Position numbers and translations under genes: made by a program. Below, in pieces: positions 27,075 through 35,901 of a DNA stretch of 43,690 nucleotides. This DNA comes from Klebsormidium nitens (Eukaryota; Plantae; Klebsormidiophyceae), in the NCBI GenBank assembly GCA_000708835.1, contig DF237635.1, forward strand, positions 1 through 43,690. Direction: 5' to 3'. The notes beneath the pieces were generated by a model. That model made no database searches. It was not told the DNA's origin and saw only the letters and a list, made by a program, of their open reading frames with translations. Position 1 is the first letter of the stretch; each line of letters starts with the position of its first letter.

Positions 27075-28002
27075 GATCTAGCAGAGTTCTTGAGATCAGC
27101 CCTTCAAATCAGTGTTTTCTCTTGGCAGATTCGAAATTGCAGCTGCGCCTGAACTCAGGGGGGTTGCCTTTTGAGGGCCAGCATTAGTCAGTGTGCCAAG
27201 TGGTGAGCTGATAACATTTGGAGCTATTCAAGGGCGAGCTTCATGCCATGGAGCAGTGTGAAAAGTCGACAGAAGGGGCTCCCAGGCGCCGTGAATCGGC
27301 AGCTTGAGTTTCTCGAAGGGGTATACCTAATTAAACACTCAGGGCCCAGGCCCTGTTTTTGTTGAAGTCCACCGGAGCTTGGCTTTAATTTCAAACCGCC
27401 CTGCACCAGTGCTCTGGACAATGTCCGGATACTTGGTGCCCAAATTGCTCCAGGTAAGTTATTTCTGATGAGCGAGGGGAACAGGAGGGCATGCCTGATT
27501 CAGTGATTGCATTTGTGGGAATTATATCCTTGTGAGAGGAAGAGGGTCTACTGAGGTGGTGAGGTGGATCAGCTGTGTTACACCAGGAGGCCACTTTTTG
27601 ATGGGCGATCTATGGGTGGCATTGCTCGATCTTGTTCATTCAGCTGGCGGGGGGAGAAGTTGCATCAAAGGCAGTGATTGCCCTTGCCGTGAGTCTGCGC
27701 ACAAAATAACTTCTGTCTTATTGTGATAGAGTTGGCGCCGTTCAACAAGCAAAGACGCACAGCTGGCAGCGAAAAGGGCACGACTGGCGGGTGTCATCAG
27801 AAAAGGTAGATGTTAGAACAACAAAGACTGGGCGCCCATGTTTTGAAGACATTCAAAAGTAAGAAGCCGGTAGGAAGTGAACAAGGAGATCAACAATGAC
27901 GTTGGTTAGTACTTTGAGTTAAATTGGATCGACATCGAACCGGCTCAATGAGATAAAACCTTCTCCCCCCAACTTACCAGAGGGGGATCCCCTGGACGCA
28001 AG
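27075..28002. promoter_or_regulatory. Divergent intergenic/promoter region between COPT and the GHL10 gene
   Basis: Start codons are ~930 bp apart, head-to-head. A plus-strand donor CAG|GTAAGT at 27454 and an acceptor ending 27980 suggest a 5' UTR intron of the GHL10 gene. Confidence 0.4.
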
Positions 28003-31000
28003 ATGGAATCCAGCGGAGGTCTGGCGTCGCTGGCGGACCGAGAATCAGAAATGATCCAGGGGGGCTTGAGAGAGCAGCTGGTGAAGATGTCGTTTCTAAC
28101 GCCGTACCCCTGGGAAGACCCGGCGTTCCGAAAGGAGCGACGCCTGCCCAATCTGGTGAGGTTCAGGGGCTTTCGGGTGGGGATAAGCAGAGTCCCTAAT
28201 TGTTTGGTTGTGGCAGATTTTCCAGCTTGTTTTATTGGGATCTGTCCTTCCGTAATTGGGTTCCTGTCCGTCCGCATTGTTGTTGAACAAGCTTGGGTAA
28301 TCTTGTGCGCTTTCGGGCTTCATTATACATCCCCCGTTTGTCAAGACAAAGCGGACTGGAGTTGATTTCCCACAGCCCACCCGGGTGGGCTTCACTTATA
28401 ACCTGATTCTGGACAGTGGCTGTCTCTCAGAATCACAAATGAGCATTGGCAAAACTTTTACCAGCTCACATCATCACACTCGGGCAAAAGCTGCCAGAAT
28501 AAGGCATGCAAACGTGTTACTGCTTCCTGCAGAGCAAAGCAGGCACCTCATCTGAGAGGGGAGAATCATGTAACTTTGAAGAAAATCTATGCTTGGCTTT
28601 AAGGGCAGCCCGCGCTTCGCGACCCTGGCAGGACCAGTCACTGTGTGAGGGGGCAGTTCTTCTGCACTTTTGACCGTTCACCTTTCTGCAATCTCAATTT
28701 TCGAGCCACTAAGAAAAGTGTTACATCAGTCATATTTGCTTATCGTTCCTGTGTAGGAGCATTAGACACTGCCCAGCTCTTAGTGCAAGTAGTCGAGTTG
28801 CTGAACGTCGAGTGCTTGGCAACGTCAACAGAGAGTTCCACTTTTATGAGCTTGTGAAAGCTAGCCCGTCAGCATTTCCTTTCACTTGCGCCAAGGAGGA
28901 TTGAGCGAGTGGCACTGAAGTGGATACAAAACAATCGTAACCGTACAAGCCATATCATGTTCACAACATACATCTCGATTCCTGAGATTGTTGGCCCGCT
29001 GTGTGGGACTGTCAAAAACTCAAGGAATTTCTCGGTTCATGAGGAAACCGGCCATGCCAATGTCTCTGGGTCGATTGTTTGTTGACAGTCTGGTTCTCAT
29101 TCTATCAGAAACTATCAGGATATAGTTTTCCTTGAGAAAAGATGTGCTTAGGTAGGCCTTGGCTTTGGCCGACAGTCGCTTGATGACGTGACTTCGCCAA
29201 CTTCTGGCACGGTCACTAATTGGAAAAAAGACCTAAAATAGTCCTGCATAGCTTGCTTTCGTGACTCTGCCTGCGTCTTGCACGGCTGCTAACCGGATAA
29301 TGAACCCAAAATACTTTGCCATTTGCACGATAGCCGTTTTGGAGGAAGCCATCCGGAGAGAAATGTAATCTGAAAGTTCCCCGTGCGTTTGCAGCGGTAC
29401 GGCGACCAGATCCGCGCCCTGTGGGTGACTCGGTGGGACTTCTACGAGAAAGAAGACATCGCTGACATCATGCGCACCACCGCAGATGCGGGCTTCAACA
29501 CCGTCTTCTTCCAGGTAATTTTTCCACACACTCAGTGGCGTTCATTTACACGGACTGGGGGAGTCCACGGTTCAGGAAGTCGCACAGCTTTGGAATTGGA
29601 TTGCGAAGAGCGATTCTCACAGTGGAGATGCCCATTCCAAACCTGGGATGGTGTATTTGGACTGAAGCGATTGTTGAACCCCTCGAAGCGCGGAAGTCTC
29701 TAGGTTCGTTCCACGCTGAAAGCTGCTGCGTTGTGAATTCATGTTCCTTTGACAAACCCTAATGACTCCCGACTATTGTTCGATTCCTTTGCAAGTGATG
29801 CACATTTTCCTCTTCAGGCCCACAGGAGACATAGAAATAAAAATAGCGTTGTGTACTAATGCGGAACCTCCGACAGGTGCGGGGTAACGGCACGGTCCTC
29901 TTCTCGAGCCGCCTCGAGCCATGGTCGGAGGCGTATCATTACCGCCACCCTGGGTTCGACCCGTTGCAGGAAGCGATTCGAGAGGCGCACAGCCGTAACA
30001 TGGCGCTACACGCCTGGATCAACGGTGGGGAAAGCATTTCTTGGTAACTCAAGTCACGTTTCGTGTGTCGTAACCGCCTAGCATGACACAACGCGCTCCT
30101 CTTCTTTCCAGCTCGAGCGCTGGAATGAGGTCTTAAGAGTTGCCGTCGCTGTTCATCCGGGTAAGTTCGTGGAGCGTCAACTTCTTGCTGTTCGTCATTT
30201 GAACAAAGAGGCGAATGACCGGAGGGCGGAGCTGCAGCCGTGAAAAGAAGTCCTTCGTTTGTTTGCTCAGTCGATTCGTTGTTTACCAACCCAGTAGCGC
30301 AGACCTTCGTTTCTTTCAATTTCTCGCTCTTGGTTCCCCCGCTTGGTCCTGTCTGCGATGCTTCTCTCCTGCACTTTCCATTACCTCCGCCTTCTTTTTC
30401 ACATTCCTCCCGTGAAGATCTCTGTCCTTTATTGCTATTGCAGGATTGCTTGCAAGCTTTGTCTTCCGGCTTTTGGGTCTCCTTATTCGTCACGAACGGG
30501 GTCCGGAATGCAAGCGAGCCTCAGTCGATCAGATTCGTCAACCAGTTTACTTCAACTTCATTCCAAATTTCAGCCAATTCATTTGACGATCATAATCTAC
30601 AACCAGTGTGAATAAGCCCCCTTCTCTGCCAGTGATTCCCCATGTGGGCCGGTCTGCGCCCTTCTTCACACCCGAACCAACTCTGGAACAACCACCCTTT
30701 TTGGAGCCGGTTCGAGAATCTTTATTGAGGTCAAATATTTCTTCCAACTACCACCTTCCACAACTTTAGTGTGAATAAGCTCCTTCCTCTGCCAGTGATG
30801 CCCATGTGGGCCGGGCTGCGCCCCCCTTCACACCCGGACCAACTCTGGAACAAGCACCCCGAGTGGAGCTGGTTCGACCGGAACGGCGAGCGTCAGCCGT
30901 TGCAGCGGGGGTTTTACGTCAGTGCCAACCCGTGCCTCCCGGAAGTTCGCCGGCATATCTCGGCGGTGTGCCGCGAGGTCTTATCCAGGTGAGGGCATCT

Positions 31001-34000
31001 CTTATGCACAAATTGAGGCTCTTTTAAGTTCGTATCAGTAGTCTTTCTCTCTGCACGAAAGGCTTTCTTGTATAGAGAGGCGTACGCTCAACTTGTGACA
31101 CACCGGAAGGCGTTTGGCATATCCCGGCAGTCAGCCGGGAAGTCCTATGCATGGGAGCCATATGATCTCATAAGCCTCCAGCACGAGGTCCTATGGAAGC
31201 TGCCAACCACTTATGTAGGAGAGTGTTCCTTATGCGAACAGTGTACTGCTAGCCGTTTGCACTCCTGACGATACGGCGACCGATCCCGGCCGTATGCTGC
31301 AAGGTCTTGTCTAGGTGATAGCATGTTCTTACGCACTCGAGTATATCTTATAACCCCTCTGTGTCAAGGTTCTAAGAACGTACCTTAGCTCCTTACTTAA
31401 ATATAAAATTGAGCCGCTAACGAGCTGATAAGCCATTTGGCAACGCAGGTACGAGGTCGACGGCATCCACTTGGACTACATCCGCTTCCCAAATGAGTGG
31501 CCGGTCGAGAACGGGAGAGAATATCCCCGAGATGAGGTGAGAACCTGCATCTCCGACTTCTTCTTATACGTGACCTGGCATGTGTGCTAGAGCCGCTTCC
31601 GAGAATTCTCAGGGTCGAGCCGACCCTTCTTCCTCGGAAAAAGACGGCCTTGACTTTCCTGGAAAAGTTCCCAGCTGCATTTCGAGCATTATGATCACCA
31701 CCCTTGATAAAACATCGCCTCATCATCATTGCTTTCTAATATATTCTCGATTGCGCTGTTCTCTGCCGCGAACGCTGGCGTCTTCCAAGCGGACACCGTT
31801 CTGGACAGCCCCGAGAGTATTAGCATCATAATTACGACGCTTGTAGTAAGAAAATTGTTTCATCATTTGTTTCCTACTCATCCGTTATTTGTCTCAGCGC
31901 ACGACGGCGCTCTTCCACGCGGACATTGGTCTCGACCCCCGTGCGTATTAGCATCATAATTTCCGAATGTATCTCACAGTGCTTCATCGTCATTGCCATT
32001 CTATTACTTTTCGGTTGCGCTGTTCTCTGCAGCGAACGCTGGCGCTTTTCCACGCGGACACCGGTCTCGACAGCCCCGAGAGTTTTCCCGCCGTCTGGGA
32101 CCAGTGGCGCTGCGACTGCGTCACGGCGCTGCTCAAAGACATTCACCGAGGTGTGAAAAGCCTCCGGCCGGCCGCGGTACTTACCGCTGCAGTAGGGGTC
32201 CAGAAAGACGAGGCGCTCGCACGCTTTCAGGTACGTACCGGGGCAGACTTTACGTTCTTCTTGACGACAATCATCGAGGTGTGAAAAGGTTCCGGCTGGT
32301 CGCGGTACTGACCGCTGCAGTCGGTCTTTACAAAAAGGCGCTCGCGTGCTCTTAGGTACGTACCAGAGAGACTTCCTGTTTTCTGCCAATTGCGGGACCG
32401 TTTTTGTGAGTGCGGGGGTGTCGGTGGGCGTGCCGATTGGAAGCAGGATCGAGTCACCTTTTTCTTTAACCCCTTCTGGAATCGTTAGGGCGACGGCGAT
32501 CGTCCGGAAAGAAGCACTCCGCTCGCACAATCTGCTGGCACGTACCACGCACCATTTGCAGAGACGGGCGCGCTCTGGTTTTCAACGAGCAGTGCTCTGT
32601 ACGTATGCAGACTGCCAAAGGTGCAGAGGCGCTCGCACTATCACTACGGTGCTCACTGGGGCCTTCGTTGTGGCAGCGTCGTCGATCGAAGTCATTTGGG
32701 TGCCGGCTCATGAACCGTCTAGAGTGGTCTGTCGGAATTTGTAATCAGACACAATGGACTTCAGGACGTCGGAATATGGTTGATTGAGTTGAATCTGCAC
32801 TCAGGACTCTGGGGCATCGTTACAGATGCTGACATCTTCTTGTGTATATATGCAAACGATCCTCCCAATCACTTCTGTCTCTTCCAGGACGTGGAAACGT
32901 GGTGGAAGGAGCGGCTGATTGACGCCGTTATTCCGATGAACTACACGAACTGCCATCGCGACTTTCGGAGCAAGTTGGAGGCGGACTGGCGCGCGGAGTG
33001 GCGCGCGCTGTCGACATTTGCGAACTCGCTGTGGGACAGGTGCGCGCGTGCCACATGGCGCTCGCGAAAGGAACGGCTCTTGCTGCGTTTGTTCCGACTC
33101 TTCCTTCCGCTCGTTCCTGATCACGGATTCCGCTCGAGTTGCGCTGCTTTCAAGTTACGAAGACTTCTTGCGGCCACGTCCTTGTGTGTCCAATAAGGAC
33201 AGCCGTTCAGGATCCTACGAAGACTCCCCACATTCCGCAGAAGGAACAACTAGGCGAATGGCAATGCATACCAAAGGGCATCAGAAGCTAGTTTTCCGTC
33301 CGCCATTTTGCGCAGGAGCCTCAAGGTTCGCGAGCGGCCGCGCCCTCCTCGGCCGTTACGGCGCACCTTCAAACGACTGCGCGACAAGTGGCGCCACCGG
33401 CAAGAGGAGCAAGCAACCAATCCCGACGAGCCACGTGGCCACCAATGGGCGCCTCCCCCGCCGCCAGGTGTCATCGTCGGGATGTCCGTAGAGTATGGCC
33501 CGACCGCCGCGCACCAAAAGCAACTCATGCTCGCCCTTCAGCGGTTCGGGCACTTCGCTATTTTCTGCTACTCGGCGCTGTTCGAGTCGAGCCGCGCGGG
33601 AGGCGCGATTCAAAACGGGGCTCCCGCCAGGGCCCGGCGCCGAGCGGAGCTGGTGCCGTTTCTAAAAGTGCTCGCAGCGGCCGCGGAGTCGAAGACGGCC
33701 GTCGTGGCTGCGGTCGCGAGCGCGGCGCTTGGGGGGCGCATCGCACGCACGCCGACGACATCCGCGGCGGTAACGGCCGCGGTGACGGGGGCGGTATCGG
33801 TTGGGGACGAGACGGAAGACGGCGGGCGAGGGTTGGAGGAACTGCGGCGGCGGTTGCAGGGCTTTCCGATGCACCCGGAAGAGGCCGCCTTTCAGGGGGA
33901 GAAAGTGACGTCAGCGGATGCGGCGGCTGTGCTCAGCACGCTAGAGGGGGGCCAAGAGGAGGGGGGCGAAGGCCTGGAGGAACCGGTTAGCGGGGTGGTT

Positions 34001-34759
34001 AGCACGCGGTTGACGGTTGGTGGACGGTCGGTTAAGGGGCCTAACGGCGAAATCGTGACGTTTCGAAGACGGACGTTTATCAGGGGGGTGAAGGCGAGAG
34101 ATGAGAGGAAGAAGCAATTACGGGAGGCGTTTGGCAGGGCGACGAGTAAAGCGAGGGGTAGGGCGACGGGTCGCCCGAGCGGGCAGCGGCGCTCGGGCGT
34201 TAGCGAAGTGGACGGATTGGACGTCCGATTGGGGGGGGAACGAGATCAAATTGTGACACGTGTCGAGCTAGCGGGACTTGCTACCGGCAATTTGAACGGC
34301 ATGCTCTTGTCACCGGAATTTGACGATGGTGAGTTGGTCGAATCGCCACTCCTAGATCCCCAGGCAGAATCTGGGGCGACTTCAGGTGTTAATGTGGGCC
34401 CGGTAGATACTTACTTAGTTGCGGAAAGGGACGCCGAGCTGGTCGAGAGTGTGAATGCGCCCCCCGAGACGCGGGAAGATATGCAGTGGGAAGCCGCAAA
34501 GCTCAAGGCAGTCACTACTTTCGACGACGCAACGGCAAACGGGGATAAAAGCTTAGCAGATCGAATCGAAGACGAGTCTGTGGATGTCCACATAGACAGA
34601 ACGGGAGATCAAATCGAAGGGGAGGGCCGCACCGTATTGGACAGCGGTGCACCGTTCGGTCATTTATCAAGCATGCTTTTAGAAGGTGGCTTTGCGCGTT
34701 CTTTAGAAGGTTTCAGATTAAGAGCTATTACGCAGGTCCGACGGCTTCGTCAAATTTGA
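28003..34759 (+). CDS. Glycosyl hydrolase-like 10 (GHL10/DUF187, YddW/DigH family) with long C-terminal extension, ~831 aa, 8 exons
   Basis: Exons 28003-28155, 29395-29514, 29877-30024, 30796-30988, 31449-31536, 32033-32230, 32888-33039, 33316-34759 (2496 nt, phases consistent). Family motifs IRALWVTRWD, AGFNTVFFQVRGNG, LEPWS, FDPLQEAIREAHSRNMALHAWIN, HPEW, NPCLPEVR, YEVDGIHLDYIRFP, QDVETWWKERLIDAVIPMNY. The first exon and the extreme C-terminus are less certain. Confidence 0.88.
30605..30697 (+). repeat. Decayed copy of the GHL10 exon-4 acceptor and exon start, 163 nt upstream of the true one
   Basis: agtgtgaataagcccccttctctgccag|tgattccccatgtgggccggtctgcgcccttcttcacacccgaaccaactctggaacaaccaccc versus 30768-30859 agtgtgaataagctccttcctctgccag|tgatgcccatgtgggccgggctgcgccccccttcacacccggaccaactctggaacaagcaccc. 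Confidence 0.92.
31683..32080 (+). repeat. Three degenerate tandem units (~130 bp) spanning the intron-5/exon-6 junction of GHL10
   Basis: Each unit has agcat(c/t)at.at...catc.tcattg...ctctgc(a/c)gcg(a/c)acg(c/a)(t/c)ggcg...ttcca(a/c)gcggaca...tct(g/c)gac. Copies at ~31683, ~31820 and ~31948; only the third is the functional acceptor (exon starts 32033). Confidence 0.88.
32263..32364 (+). repeat. Decayed copy of the GHL10 exon-6 3' end and donor, in intron 6
   Basis: gacaatcatcgaggtgtgaaaaggttccggctggtcgcggtactgaccgctgcagtcgg...aggcgctcgcgtgctcttag|gtacgtacc versus the exon gacattcaccgaggtgtgaaaagcctccggccggccgcggtacttaccgctgcagtagg...aggcgctcgcacgctttcag|gtacgtacc. Confidence 0.92.
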
Positions 34760-35901
34760 GGTGATCTTGGCTAACAATTCCATGTCGTAGATACAGAAGA
34801 CTTGGAGGAACGACAAAACTTCCTTCGAGGCTCTAGTCTTAGAATGGACAATCAGGCATCGTTTGAAGGGCCGAGATAAAGGGCCGAAGACGAATTTGGA
34901 CTTAGCATAACCCGAGTATATCGGCGATCCAATTAATCAGATGGTTTAGTCAGGGAGATTTCGGCTTGCTTGGAGTCCTAGACGTCAATTAAAGGCTCGG
35001 TACTCAGTAGAAGGGCCCGTGATTGCATGCCACCTTGGCGACGGCATCGATTGTGCATCTTTTGGCGATGATGCTGACGTCGTGATCACAATCAACTCAC
35101 ATACATGCGCCGGCCTGCCTGCTTGTGACGCGATCATATTGCGCCATACCGCCACATGCAATCCTGGCAGGCAGCGAGTTGTAGCCCGACGATCTCAGTG
35201 ACGCGAGCACAACCGAACTTACAAATTCGGCAGGCTTGTGACGAGCTTAGACTGCACCGTTGAGGACAATAGTACATAGCTGGACAACAGCTCACATAGC
35301 TCCGGATTTACGCTCAGTGTGATCTCGCACTGCATAGGAGCTGAATGAATGATTACGATTACGAATCGATTAGTGCGACACTTGCCGGTGATCCGGTGCT
35401 CGATCAGATCTCCCGCGGGCGCGGCCCGGGCCCACCTTTTGACCGGCCGCACCATGAAGAGTAATGGGTCGTGCTGTGCATTTGCCCGTTGCCTGCATGG
35501 TGCATTTTCGGGATATACGCTTGAAGGACGACCTTGCAACCATCATTGCAGGATACTGGATACTCGAACCCAATTTCATAAGCGTTCGTTCGATGTGAGA
35601 AATAGTTGCTATTAGGACCGTTCCTAATGTACGTTTGACTTCAATGCTATACTTTACCTGTGCACATGCGCGGTGCTGGTCGACTGAAGGCTAGTCCGCT
35701 GAGCGCATCCTCCAAATCCTACGCGCGTTAACAAATCTATGATACAACTTACCAGGGCTCGTTTTGGTTCTCTTATGACGATCTATTGATCGGTTAGATC
35801 GGGCGTTCGACGCAAAGCGGGTATCGAGCATTTGAAACTGATCACCTTGTAGCTATTAGTCTATCCATTGGCAATTTGAAAACACCCCTCTACTCGCCTT
35901 T

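Follow-up and report, generated by a model that had tools for sequence, protein, structure and literature searches.

The window analysed here, which is the whole 43,690-base contig on record for the Klebsormidium nitens hypothetical protein KFL_006860060 (P0001), carries an expressed, intron-bearing nuclear gene at positions 28003-34759 of the forward strand. The gene is a horizontally acquired bacterial gene that was domesticated in a eukaryote: it is nested in a bacterial clade, is interrupted by introns and has been inherited vertically. Its product is modelled as a soluble GHL10 (β/α)8 barrel and, by family, is expected to be a glycosidase. The best explanation, to which a probability of about 0.5 is given, is that a planctomycete-like acquisition supplied a soluble GHL10 glycosidase that would cleave glycans of the peptidoglycan type and be linked to the plastid wall.

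The exon model was rebuilt by hand and describes one gene of eight exons and seven introns. All seven introns have GT..AG ends, the reading frame is open across 831 amino acids, and the translation equals the annotated protein letter for letter. Each of the seven splice joints was found at its exact model position in Logan RNA contigs from four runs belonging to four studies. A sequence-only reading of this DNA had described a complete GHL10 barrel spread over seven canonical introns, and every motif that it quoted is present. The 5′ untranslated region (27400..28002, on the forward strand like all features given below) is about 600 nt long, contains nine upstream ATGs and is unspliced. The RNA contigs of runs X2, X9 and X12 start at about 27394-27424 and continue unbroken to 28154, and no splicing was seen from about 27400 to 28154. 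The in-frame stop nearest to the ATG at 28003 on its upstream side is a TGA at 27949, 54 nt 5′ of it. Together, the RNA contigs and this stop codon identify Met1 at 28003, at the head of an acidic segment (MESSGG...), as the true start in the transcripts seen.

Exon 1 (28003..28155) encodes Met1 and the acidic N-terminal segment and ends in the streptophyte-conserved PYxxEDPAFRxxxRLPNL. The barrel starts in exon 2 (29395..29514) with strand 1 (RALWVTRWD) and continues to GFNTVFFQ, while exon 3 (29877..30024) carries VRGNG...EPW, which includes the invariant E105, and HAWIN; both are listed with an intron position common to Marchantia. Exon 4 (30796..30988) runs from VMPMW to NPCLPEVR, and the intron downstream of it is absent from the set shared with Marchantia. 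Exon 5 (31449..31536) encodes YEVDGIHLDYIRFPNE, with the invariant D214 and Y215, the NE motif and, in the exon end ...PRDE, the invariant D233. Exon 6 (32033..32230) contains RTLALF, WDQWR, LTAAVG and a closing FQ; exon 7 (32888..33039) covers DVETWW...IPMNY and the start of an insert specific to the green lineage. Exon 8 (33316..34759) encodes what remains of the insert, followed by the final barrel strands (VIVGMS, FAIFCYSALF), then the closing helix and a hydrophilic tail of about 360 residues, and it ends with the TGA stop codon (34757-34759). The tail shows the streptophyte motifs HPEE, GGR..GE.V..RRT.R and WEA.K, followed by an end found in Klebsormidium only. Searches with the last exon and the tail gave no relatives outside Klebsormidium and no Pfam domain.

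The spliced protein matches Pfam GHL10 (PF02638, formerly DUF187; UPF0748) with 128.4 bits against a cut-off of 27.9 (E=4.1e-37, residues 56-326), which bears out the family assignment of the sequence-only reading. Single exons gave weak partial matches only, so that the spliced protein is required for the full match. The orthologues likewise match the Pfam profile, and NCBIfam has no model for this GHL10 subfamily. The AlphaFold2 model (pLDDT 85.9, pTM 0.83) is a (β/α)8 barrel whose top PDB matches are all chains of Clostridioides difficile Cwp19 (PDB 5OQ2/5OQ3), the best being 5oq2 with a Foldseek E=2e-22 and a TM of 0.71. A sequence comparison likewise gave Cwp19 as its only match of known structure (E=5e-23), with 19-20% identity to the K. 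nitens protein. The GHL10 domain of Cwp19 is a lytic transglycosylase that cuts peptidoglycan glycans (PMC6016235), and the protein is secreted, with CWB2 repeats (PMC5765458, PMC6016235).

The residues named for Cwp19 are Q77, W127, R132, D195, D196 and Y197. By alignment, Q77, W127 and D195 correspond to Q91, W138 and D214 of K. nitens, the proposed catalytic D196 is replaced by Tyr215, and R132 falls on P143 and has no clear counterpart. These differences from the Cwp19 active site are common to the whole planctomycete-type subfamily. An alignment of 68 subfamily sequences has 24 invariant columns, and the plant proteins retain the residue in every one of them, including E105, D214 and D233. 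Because D196 aligns to Tyr215, mechanism and bond specificity are not transferable from Cwp19 or DigH. K. nitens has Ala146 where most relatives have Arg, and barrel identity among streptophytes is 53-66%. In a full-length model of the Marchantia protein, the N-terminal motif and the tail, the latter of low confidence, have no confident structure and thus give no indication of a mechanism.

DigH (YddW) is a divisome-localised glycosyl hydrolase of denuded glycan strands in E. coli (PMC12288456). It shares with the K. nitens protein the GHL10 barrel and the motifs QV(R/K), PW and HAW.N. However, DigH has FDDY and FNPYR where the K. nitens subfamily has LDYIRFP and VNVMPxW, and it is a lipoprotein, whereas the K. 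nitens protein has no lipoprotein signal. The two proteins are 24% identical and belong to different subfamilies, with Tyr at the second Asp of the FDDY motif. The YddW/DigH label of the sequence-only reading does not hold as orthology, in view of the identity, the motifs and the long outgroup branch of DigH.

The closest bacterial homologues are Planctomycetota/Phycisphaerae lipoproteins, which are 50-55% identical over about 70% of the domain and 42-47% over the whole barrel. Those annotated as 'family 10 glycosylhydrolase' (for example P0018, P0037, P0093, P0014 and P0048) share LDYIRFPNE, VNVMPxW and EPW with the plant clade; they are about 400 amino acids long, have a lipobox signal peptide and are frequently part of murQ-symporter operons. 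The plant proteins, in contrast, have no signal and have added the N-terminal motif, the insert after PMNY and a disordered tail of 190-360 residues. In the trees, the streptophyte clade (support 100/99) branches roughly in species order, and its sister is a compact GC-rich eukaryote (100/99). All eukaryotic sequences fall inside one clade (100/90) in which every named member is from Planctomycetota/Phycisphaerae, and a monophyletic grouping of the eukaryotic sequences is not rejected by the AU test (p=0.23). The placement of the Cyanophora LysM protein as sister of the green clade (85/54) dissolved into a polytomy after denser sampling. A single-protein search of genome contigs returned two distant Phycisphaerae loci only, and for the protein of the compact eukaryote (P0009) the ESM Atlas gave nothing beyond generic bacterial GHL10 clusters. 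DigH and the GHL10 proteins of Nostoc and Deinococcus form very long outgroup branches. Cyanobacteria do possess GHL10 proteins; the one sequence compared, a thin sample, is 29% identical and falls far outside the eukaryote-bearing clade.

Five introns of K. nitens recur in Marchantia at identical alignment columns and in identical phase, and one more agrees in phase and lies within five columns. With five or six of seven introns in common, the gene must be ancient and vertically inherited. The nesting among Planctomycetota/Phycisphaerae points to a planctomycete-like rather than a cyanobacterial origin. Of the two origins that had been envisaged for the gene, endosymbiotic and horizontal, the former is therefore not supported, and the latter agrees with the position inside a bacterial clade and the vertical inheritance afterwards.

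Eukaryote-type members were found by word-index searches and an exhaustive profile search only in Klebsormidium, Spirogloea, Mesotaenium, Sphagnum, Marchantia, Riccia, Ginkgo, gymnosperm-like transcripts, glaucophytes and the one compact GC-rich eukaryote. The orthologues of Marchantia, Riccia and Sphagnum are located on chromosome-scale sequences. In the same word-index and profile searches, angiosperms and named chlorophytes gave no homologue, and no orthologue was seen in Selaginella, ferns, hornworts or Physcomitrium, the plant in which plastid peptidoglycan is best documented. The complete set of Mur genes has been reported for K. nitens, Marchantia, gymnosperms, a glaucophyte and prasinophytes and not for angiosperms, and Mur genes are also present in Physcomitrium and Selaginella (PMC12681378). 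All identified eukaryotic carriers come from lineages for which plastid peptidoglycan genes are reported or expected, but the gene was not found in Physcomitrium or Selaginella, which have such genes, and is therefore not a universal part of the plastid peptidoglycan system.

Neighbouring genes and fused domains suggest what the enzyme may act upon. In four of nine bacterial genomes sampled, murQ, an SSF symporter and GHL10 stand in a row, with murQ identified by TIGR00274 (390 and 374 bits against a cut-off of 302); the murQ link is absent from the other five loci. Amidase_3, NamZ and further GHL10 genes occur near the murQ-symporter-GHL10 loci, and symporter-GHL10 fusion proteins exist among the close bacterial homologues. 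In glaucophytes, tig00000169_g11892 of Cyanophora combines GHL10 with two LysM domains, and a β-lactamase-like domain is joined to GHL10 in tig00000849_g4756 of Cyanophora and CAMPEP_0184651612 of Gloeochaete. These fusions belong to the same subfamily (42-45% identity) and come from algae with a peptidoglycan-walled plastid; they have accessory domains and longer N-termini and are without the N-terminal motif, insert and tail of the green lineage. The data do not reject one clade that unites them with the green-lineage genes, and the trees give them no firm position relative to the plant clade. We infer the substrate from the bacterial operon context, the domain fusions and the phyletic pattern, which make a peptidoglycan-related one plausible, and we infer the plastid link as well.

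The plastid wall lies in the space that separates the two envelope membranes, out of reach of a protein that simply resides in the cytosol. By composition and hydropathy, no transit peptide, signal peptide or hydrophobic or membrane segment is present in any streptophyte orthologue. In all of them except Riccia, 27-57 acidic or neutral residues with the conserved motif precede the barrel; the longer annotated N-terminus of Riccia has no import signal or membrane segment either. The K. nitens N-terminus has no lipobox or hydrophobic segment, in contrast to the lipobox signal peptide of its close bacterial homologues. The remark that the acidic N-terminus does not resemble a transit peptide applies to the true start of the protein. 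Of the proposed plastid peptidoglycan hydrolase, the substrate remains plausible, whereas a plastid location is not supported by the sequence. None of the results that the sequence-only reading had named as contradicting it was obtained.

According to the preferred explanation, an ancestor of the green lineage, possibly of all Archaeplastida, would have taken the gene from a Planctomycetota-like bacterium. Introns would then have been gained and the lipoprotein signal lost, and the protein would have been extended by a short conserved motif at its N-terminus, an internal insert and a disordered tail at its C-terminus, with vertical descent since. The substrate would most likely be MurNAc-GlcNAc (peptidoglycan-type) strands or fragments from the plastid wall, and the role wall remodelling or turnover. 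As no import signal exists, the compartment is left to two alternatives: the envelope may be reached by a non-canonical route, or wall fragments that escape may be digested in the cytosol. The points counted against this explanation are the missing targeting signal, the absence from Physcomitrium, Selaginella, ferns and hornworts, the change of D196 to Tyr215, the five of nine loci without murQ, and the report that DogH, another GHL10 member, is active on starch (PMC9967864). A more specific version can be put forward only tentatively. It describes a hitherto unrecognised glycan-cleaving component of the plastid peptidoglycan system, acquired once from a Planctomycetota-like bacterium by the archaeplastid (or green-lineage) ancestor and retained only by lineages that still have the wall, namely glaucophytes, a prasinophyte-like alga, streptophyte algae, Sphagnum, liverworts and gymnosperms. 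In the green lineage, it would be delivered to the envelope or act beside it with no classical transit peptide.

The same gene, with the same bacterial origin, may instead encode a cytosolic or nuclear enzyme that acts on another glycan, such as an α-glucan or another GlcNAc-containing sugar, its restriction to walled lineages being due to losses for unrelated reasons. This is possible, if doubtful. It would agree with the reported starch activity of DogH, the bacterial loci without a muramic-acid context, the absence from Physcomitrium and Selaginella despite their Mur genes, the lack of a targeting signal in all orthologues, and the established start codon; new partners are also suggested by the N-terminal motif, insert and disordered basic tail of the green lineage. 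However, all identified eukaryotic carriers belong to lineages reported or known to keep plastid peptidoglycan genes, the glaucophyte homologues bear LysM or β-lactamase-like domains, close bacterial homologues are encoded in murQ-symporter operons or joined to the symporter in one protein, and both well-characterised family members cut peptidoglycan. It is improbable that the barrel has turned into a non-catalytic, glycan-binding or scaffolding module, as could be read from the Tyr in place of the proposed catalytic Asp of Cwp19, from Ala146 and from the long disordered tail with its short conserved motifs. The Asp-to-Tyr change is also found throughout the bacterial subfamily, including operon-encoded lipoproteins, and is therefore a subfamily trait and not decay; moreover, the 24 subfamily-invariant residues are retained and the streptophyte barrels remain well conserved.

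An endosymbiotic murein hydrolase of cyanobacterial descent, functionally equivalent to DigH at the plastid division site, would fit the shared Pfam family, the occurrence of GHL10 proteins in cyanobacteria and the distribution over peptidoglycan-keeping lineages (PMC12681378). It is nevertheless very unlikely in view of the low identity and different motifs of DigH, the outgroup position of DigH and of the Nostoc and Deinococcus proteins, the distant cyanobacterial sequence, the named close relatives, which are all Planctomycetota, and the absence of a transit peptide. The chance of a bacterial contaminant or assembly artefact is negligible, even though the family is mostly bacterial and the contig only 43.7 kb long. 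It was rejected on the GT-AG introns joined in RNA contigs from four studies, the intron positions shared with Marchantia, and the orthologues in Marchantia, Riccia and Sphagnum; further orthologues in Ginkgo, Spirogloea and Mesotaenium agree with the sequence-only reading, which had already called this a domesticated nuclear gene.

How walled plastids open and recycle their glycan strands in growth and division has been tested for few hydrolases, in Cyanophora and Physcomitrium only. DipM of Cyanophora (PMC4015805) and the hydrolases that Utsunomiya et al. 2021 studied in moss (cited in PMC12681378) resemble the present candidate in being nuclear and of bacterial type; they are proposed or shown to process plastid peptidoglycan at division, belong to unrelated families and are experimentally tested. 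The papers searched contain no report of a GHL10 member as a plastid-wall hydrolase and none linking the GHL10 family to plastids. Since Marchantia is transformable, the candidate can be tested by genetics through Mp3g10680. The gene also illustrates cleanly how plants long ago took up a gene from bacteria other than cyanobacteria, after which introns were gained, an export signal was lost and eukaryote-specific extensions were added. If the enzyme is cytosolic, it would suggest that the host disposes of fragments of the plastid wall, a process that has yet to be described in plants. For Planctomycetota, a route for the salvage of muramic acid is predicted from the murQ-symporter-GHL10 operon.

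Degenerate tandem copies of exon boundaries were also found inside three of the introns. Intron 3 contains one (30605..30715) that copies its own acceptor and the start of exon 4 (repeat families D1 and D6; 87-89% identity, spacing 162-163). Two in intron 5 (31712..31951) copy the intron-5 acceptor and the start of exon 6 (D2, D4 and D5), and one in intron 6 (32257..32324) copies the end of exon 6 (D3; 82% identity, spacing 128).

Assembled from the open reading frames of the window, the GHL10 gene of Klebsormidium nitens consists of eight forward-strand exons (28003-28155, 29395-29514, 29877-30024, 30796-30988, 31449-31536, 32033-32230, 32888-33039 and 33316-34759), with GT..AG at every intron and a spliced frame that is open over 831 aa. 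The motifs from which a complete GHL10 barrel, the (beta/alpha)8 domain of this family, had been read in the sequence were all found in the ORFs of the region, and the spliced protein matches Pfam GHL10 (PF02638) at residues 56-326 with E=4.1e-37. The translation is identical to the 831-aa NCBI entry 'hypothetical protein KFL_006860060 [Klebsormidium nitens]', listed in UniRef as a GHL10-domain protein. The gene is therefore already annotated, by automatic means only.

Splicing was examined in RNA contigs from four runs of four studies, aligned to window 27500-33450. All seven introns are canonical in these contigs, since each of the seven joints was seen, with GT..AG, at the modelled exon border. 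The observation made in the sequence-only reading, namely the motifs, the introns and the GHL10 domain, was thus confirmed in full. Of the words sampled from the stretch, 40-62% occur in each of eighteen runs, whose records give no library type; this fits spliced RNA with some intron retention. Introns 3, 5 and 6 hold degenerate tandem copies of the adjoining exon ends and splice sites (30605-30715, 31712-31951 and 32257-32324; 62-90% identical, spaced 128-163 nt apart), which form decoy acceptors and donors beside the real splice sites. Parts of these introns are covered by low-depth RNA contigs.

The same contigs settle the start codon in these transcripts. They run unspliced upstream from 28154 to beyond 27500, and three of them begin at about 27394-27424. 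The nearest in-frame stop 5' of the ATG at 28003 is a TGA at 27949. Between the two there is no ATG, GTG or TTG, so that translation of these transcripts does begin at Met1. The visible acidic N-terminus, which had seemed unlike a classical transit peptide, is accordingly the real one in the transcripts examined. At about 600 nt, the 5' UTR (27400-28002) is of unusual length; it carries nine upstream ATGs that open short frames, which may point to translational control. The contig of one run extends about 680 nt farther upstream than the 5' ends from other runs.

A predicted model of residues 1-480 shows a (beta/alpha)8 barrel (pLDDT 85.9, pTM 0.83), with low confidence for the N-terminal 45 residues and for an insert at about 335-400. 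Its best matches among solved structures are chains of Cwp19, a characterised GHL10 enzyme of C. difficile, with the PgaB C-terminal domain and a GH156 sialidase next. Close bacterial homologues are about 400 aa long and carry a lipobox signal, in place of which the streptophyte proteins have a short acidic or neutral N-terminus that closes with the conserved (L/M)CPYExEDPAFRRxGRLPNL(R/K)YGDQ. The streptophyte proteins share an insert after PMNY with P0009 and P0010, two eukaryote-type homologues, and end in a hydrophilic, basic tail with the motifs HPFR, HPEE, GGR..GE.VK..RRT.RR and NWEAVKMSEAT. No 19-residue window in the streptophyte proteins reaches membrane-segment hydropathy. In a full-length model of the Marchantia orthologue, Mp3g10680, the N-terminus and the tail fall below pLDDT 50. 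Relatives of the last ~200 tail residues were found only in Klebsormidium-like sequences (P0002-P0004). The last K. nitens exon encodes an Ala/Gly/Arg/Glu-rich tail and is much richer in G+C (window 33000-34760; about 65% at 33-34 kb versus about 50% in the rest of the gene).

The proposed likeness to DigH, the E. coli YddW enzyme, was upheld as to family but not as to orthology. The two proteins are only 24% identical; DigH and Cwp19 carry FDDY and FNPYR, whereas the plant and planctomycete subfamily has LDYIRFP(NE) and VNVMPxW, and DigH forms a long outgroup branch in the trees. D196 of Cwp19, proposed to be catalytic (PMC5765458), aligns with Tyr215 of the K. nitens protein. Given the other motifs and this replacement, catalytic details cannot be transferred from DigH or Cwp19. 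Invariant acidic residues of the subfamily's own are E105, D214 and D233, and all 24 columns that are invariant over 68 subfamily sequences are retained in the plant proteins.

The named bacterial proteins among the best matches all belong to Planctomycetota or Phycisphaerae, with 50-55% identity over ~70% of the domain or 42-47% over the entire domain. In a first careful IQ-TREE analysis under a site-heterogeneous model, the streptophytes formed a clade (100/99) in the order Klebsormidium, Zygnematophyceae, land plants, with P0009/P0010 as its sister (100/97; 100/99 in a denser tree). The denser tree placed all eukaryotic sequences within a 100/90 clade in which every named member belongs to Planctomycetota; a Phycisphaerae sequence is likewise present in the next outgroup. 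The green clade, a Cyanophora LysM protein and the glaucophyte beta-lactamase fusions have no supported order inside this clade. Constraining all eukaryotic sequences to a single clade cost 10.9 log-likelihood units and was not rejected (AU p=0.23), so one old transfer behind all of them is possible on these trees. The endosymbiotic origin offered by the sequence-only reading was not borne out: only Planctomycetota and Phycisphaerae are named nearby, and the GHL10 protein of a Nostoc plasmid (29% identical), a thin cyanobacterial sample of one sequence, lies far outside the group on a very long branch, as do E. coli DigH and a Deinococcus DogH-like protein. The idea of a bacterial-type gene domesticated in the nucleus holds, for besides the RNA-confirmed introns, mapping of the Marchantia protein to its genomic locus showed five K. 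nitens introns at the identical alignment column and phase, and a sixth, of equal phase, no more than five columns off, inside an insert that aligns poorly. These common positions indicate that the gene was already intron-bearing before the Klebsormidium and land-plant lines parted.

Clues to the substrate come from the gene context of nine close bacterial homologues in distinct genomes. In four of the nine loci, from Planctomycetota-type genomes, the GHL10 gene comes immediately after murQ and a gene for a sodium:solute symporter (L010 3140-7200, L011 3135-7206, L012 3029-7182 and L015 3112-7206). MurQ is securely identified as N-acetylmuramic acid 6-phosphate etherase (TIGR00274, with scores of 390 and 374 bits where 302 is the cut-off), and the row predicts a muramic-acid salvage system in Planctomycetota. 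It is often trailed by a protein of ~1025 aa (Golvesin_C, with a weak Amidase_3 match) and GHL10 paralogues; Amidase_3, further GHL10 genes and, once, the exo-muramidase NamZ occur near such loci. Two proteins in the same clade are symporter-GHL10 fusions. The other five loci have sulfatase and DUF5010, NAGPA, Peptidase_M14, or no informative neighbours. The distant GHL10 gene of Nostoc plasmid pNPM5 (L017 1-3792), flanked by genes for an annotated peptidoglycan-binding protein and for an M15 metallopeptidase, provides another wall-related context for the family. Glaucophyte homologues are of two kinds: a Cyanophora GHL10 protein with two LysM domains (70 bits), and a form with a beta-lactamase-like domain ahead of GHL10 in Cyanophora, Gloeochaete and the metagenome protein P0135 (glaucophyte fused proteins P0128, P0149 and P0294). 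Cleavage of peptidoglycan was demonstrated for Cwp19 (PMC6016235) and DigH (PMC12288456). Taken together, gene contexts, fusions and characterised relatives favour a MurNAc-containing glycan as the most likely substrate.

Relatives were sought by two word-index searches with the barrel as query, together covering proteins of 218-1454 aa (for 218-693 aa, matches listed down to 320 bits), and by an exhaustive search of 1.84 billion representatives with a profile that took in the eukaryote-specific N-terminus, insert and tail, so that eukaryote-type proteins rank first. Green members were found in Spirogloea, Mesotaenium, several Sphagnum species, Marchantia, Riccia and Ginkgo; the only other eukaryote-type members among the matches listed are Ginkgo-branching transcripts, a few plant-like sequences and P0009/P0010. 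Among the matches listed in these searches, there was no homologue from an angiosperm, a named chlorophyte, a red alga, Physcomitrium, Selaginella, a fern or a hornwort, the representative library being one that collapses relatives above 50% identity and that weak or fragmentary homologues could escape. The P0009 gene (L004, ENA ERZ27313045, contig k141_788776, 4803-6779) sits on a contig of 13.5 kb with 65-70% GC, beside intron-less ORC3, HYOU1-type HSP70, SAP and CREG genes. Its host, a eukaryote whose genome is compact, may be prasinophyte-like, and prasinophytes reportedly retain Mur genes. The P0009 N-terminus is acidic, and no import signal was seen in it.

All ten Mur genes are reported from prasinophytes, K. 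nitens, Marchantia, Selaginella, Thuja, Picea, Pinus, Physcomitrium and a glaucophyte, and none from angiosperms (PMC12681378). Every identified carrier of the GHL10 gene belongs to this Mur-keeping set or a sister lineage, and none to a lineage that is known to be without the set. The agreement runs in one direction only, because the gene was not found in Physcomitrium or Selaginella; its role could be in a step that is dispensable or redundant, but not in a core one. Of the suggested role in plastid peptidoglycan, the link to peptidoglycan is probable from gene contexts and fusions, but the plastid location did not find support, as no import signal was present in any streptophyte orthologue examined.

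The chief obstacle is one of access: the plastid wall is situated between the envelope membranes, and an import signal is absent from all the streptophyte proteins. The enzyme may be delivered to the envelope by a non-canonical route, or it may act in the cytosol on wall fragments leaving the plastid. In topology the latter arrangement would resemble that of the bacterial lipoproteins, whose action takes place outside the cytoplasmic membrane and supplies a salvage pathway. Alternatively, the plant enzyme may have a new role unrelated to peptidoglycan.

In the full-text literature, outside subscription journals, no paper was found that ties GHL10, PF02638, DUF187, UPF0748, YddW or DigH to plants or plastids, and no mention of the gene identifiers was found there. 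Both the clade that the K. nitens gene defines and the hypothesis resting on it seem to be new. The land-plant-like orthologue P0125 (697 aa) is encoded in a single uninterrupted frame (L005 8001-10094, Logan SRR33208241) within a contig of 19 kb on which the other genes look intron-fragmented, and may be an intron-less or retro-copied version.
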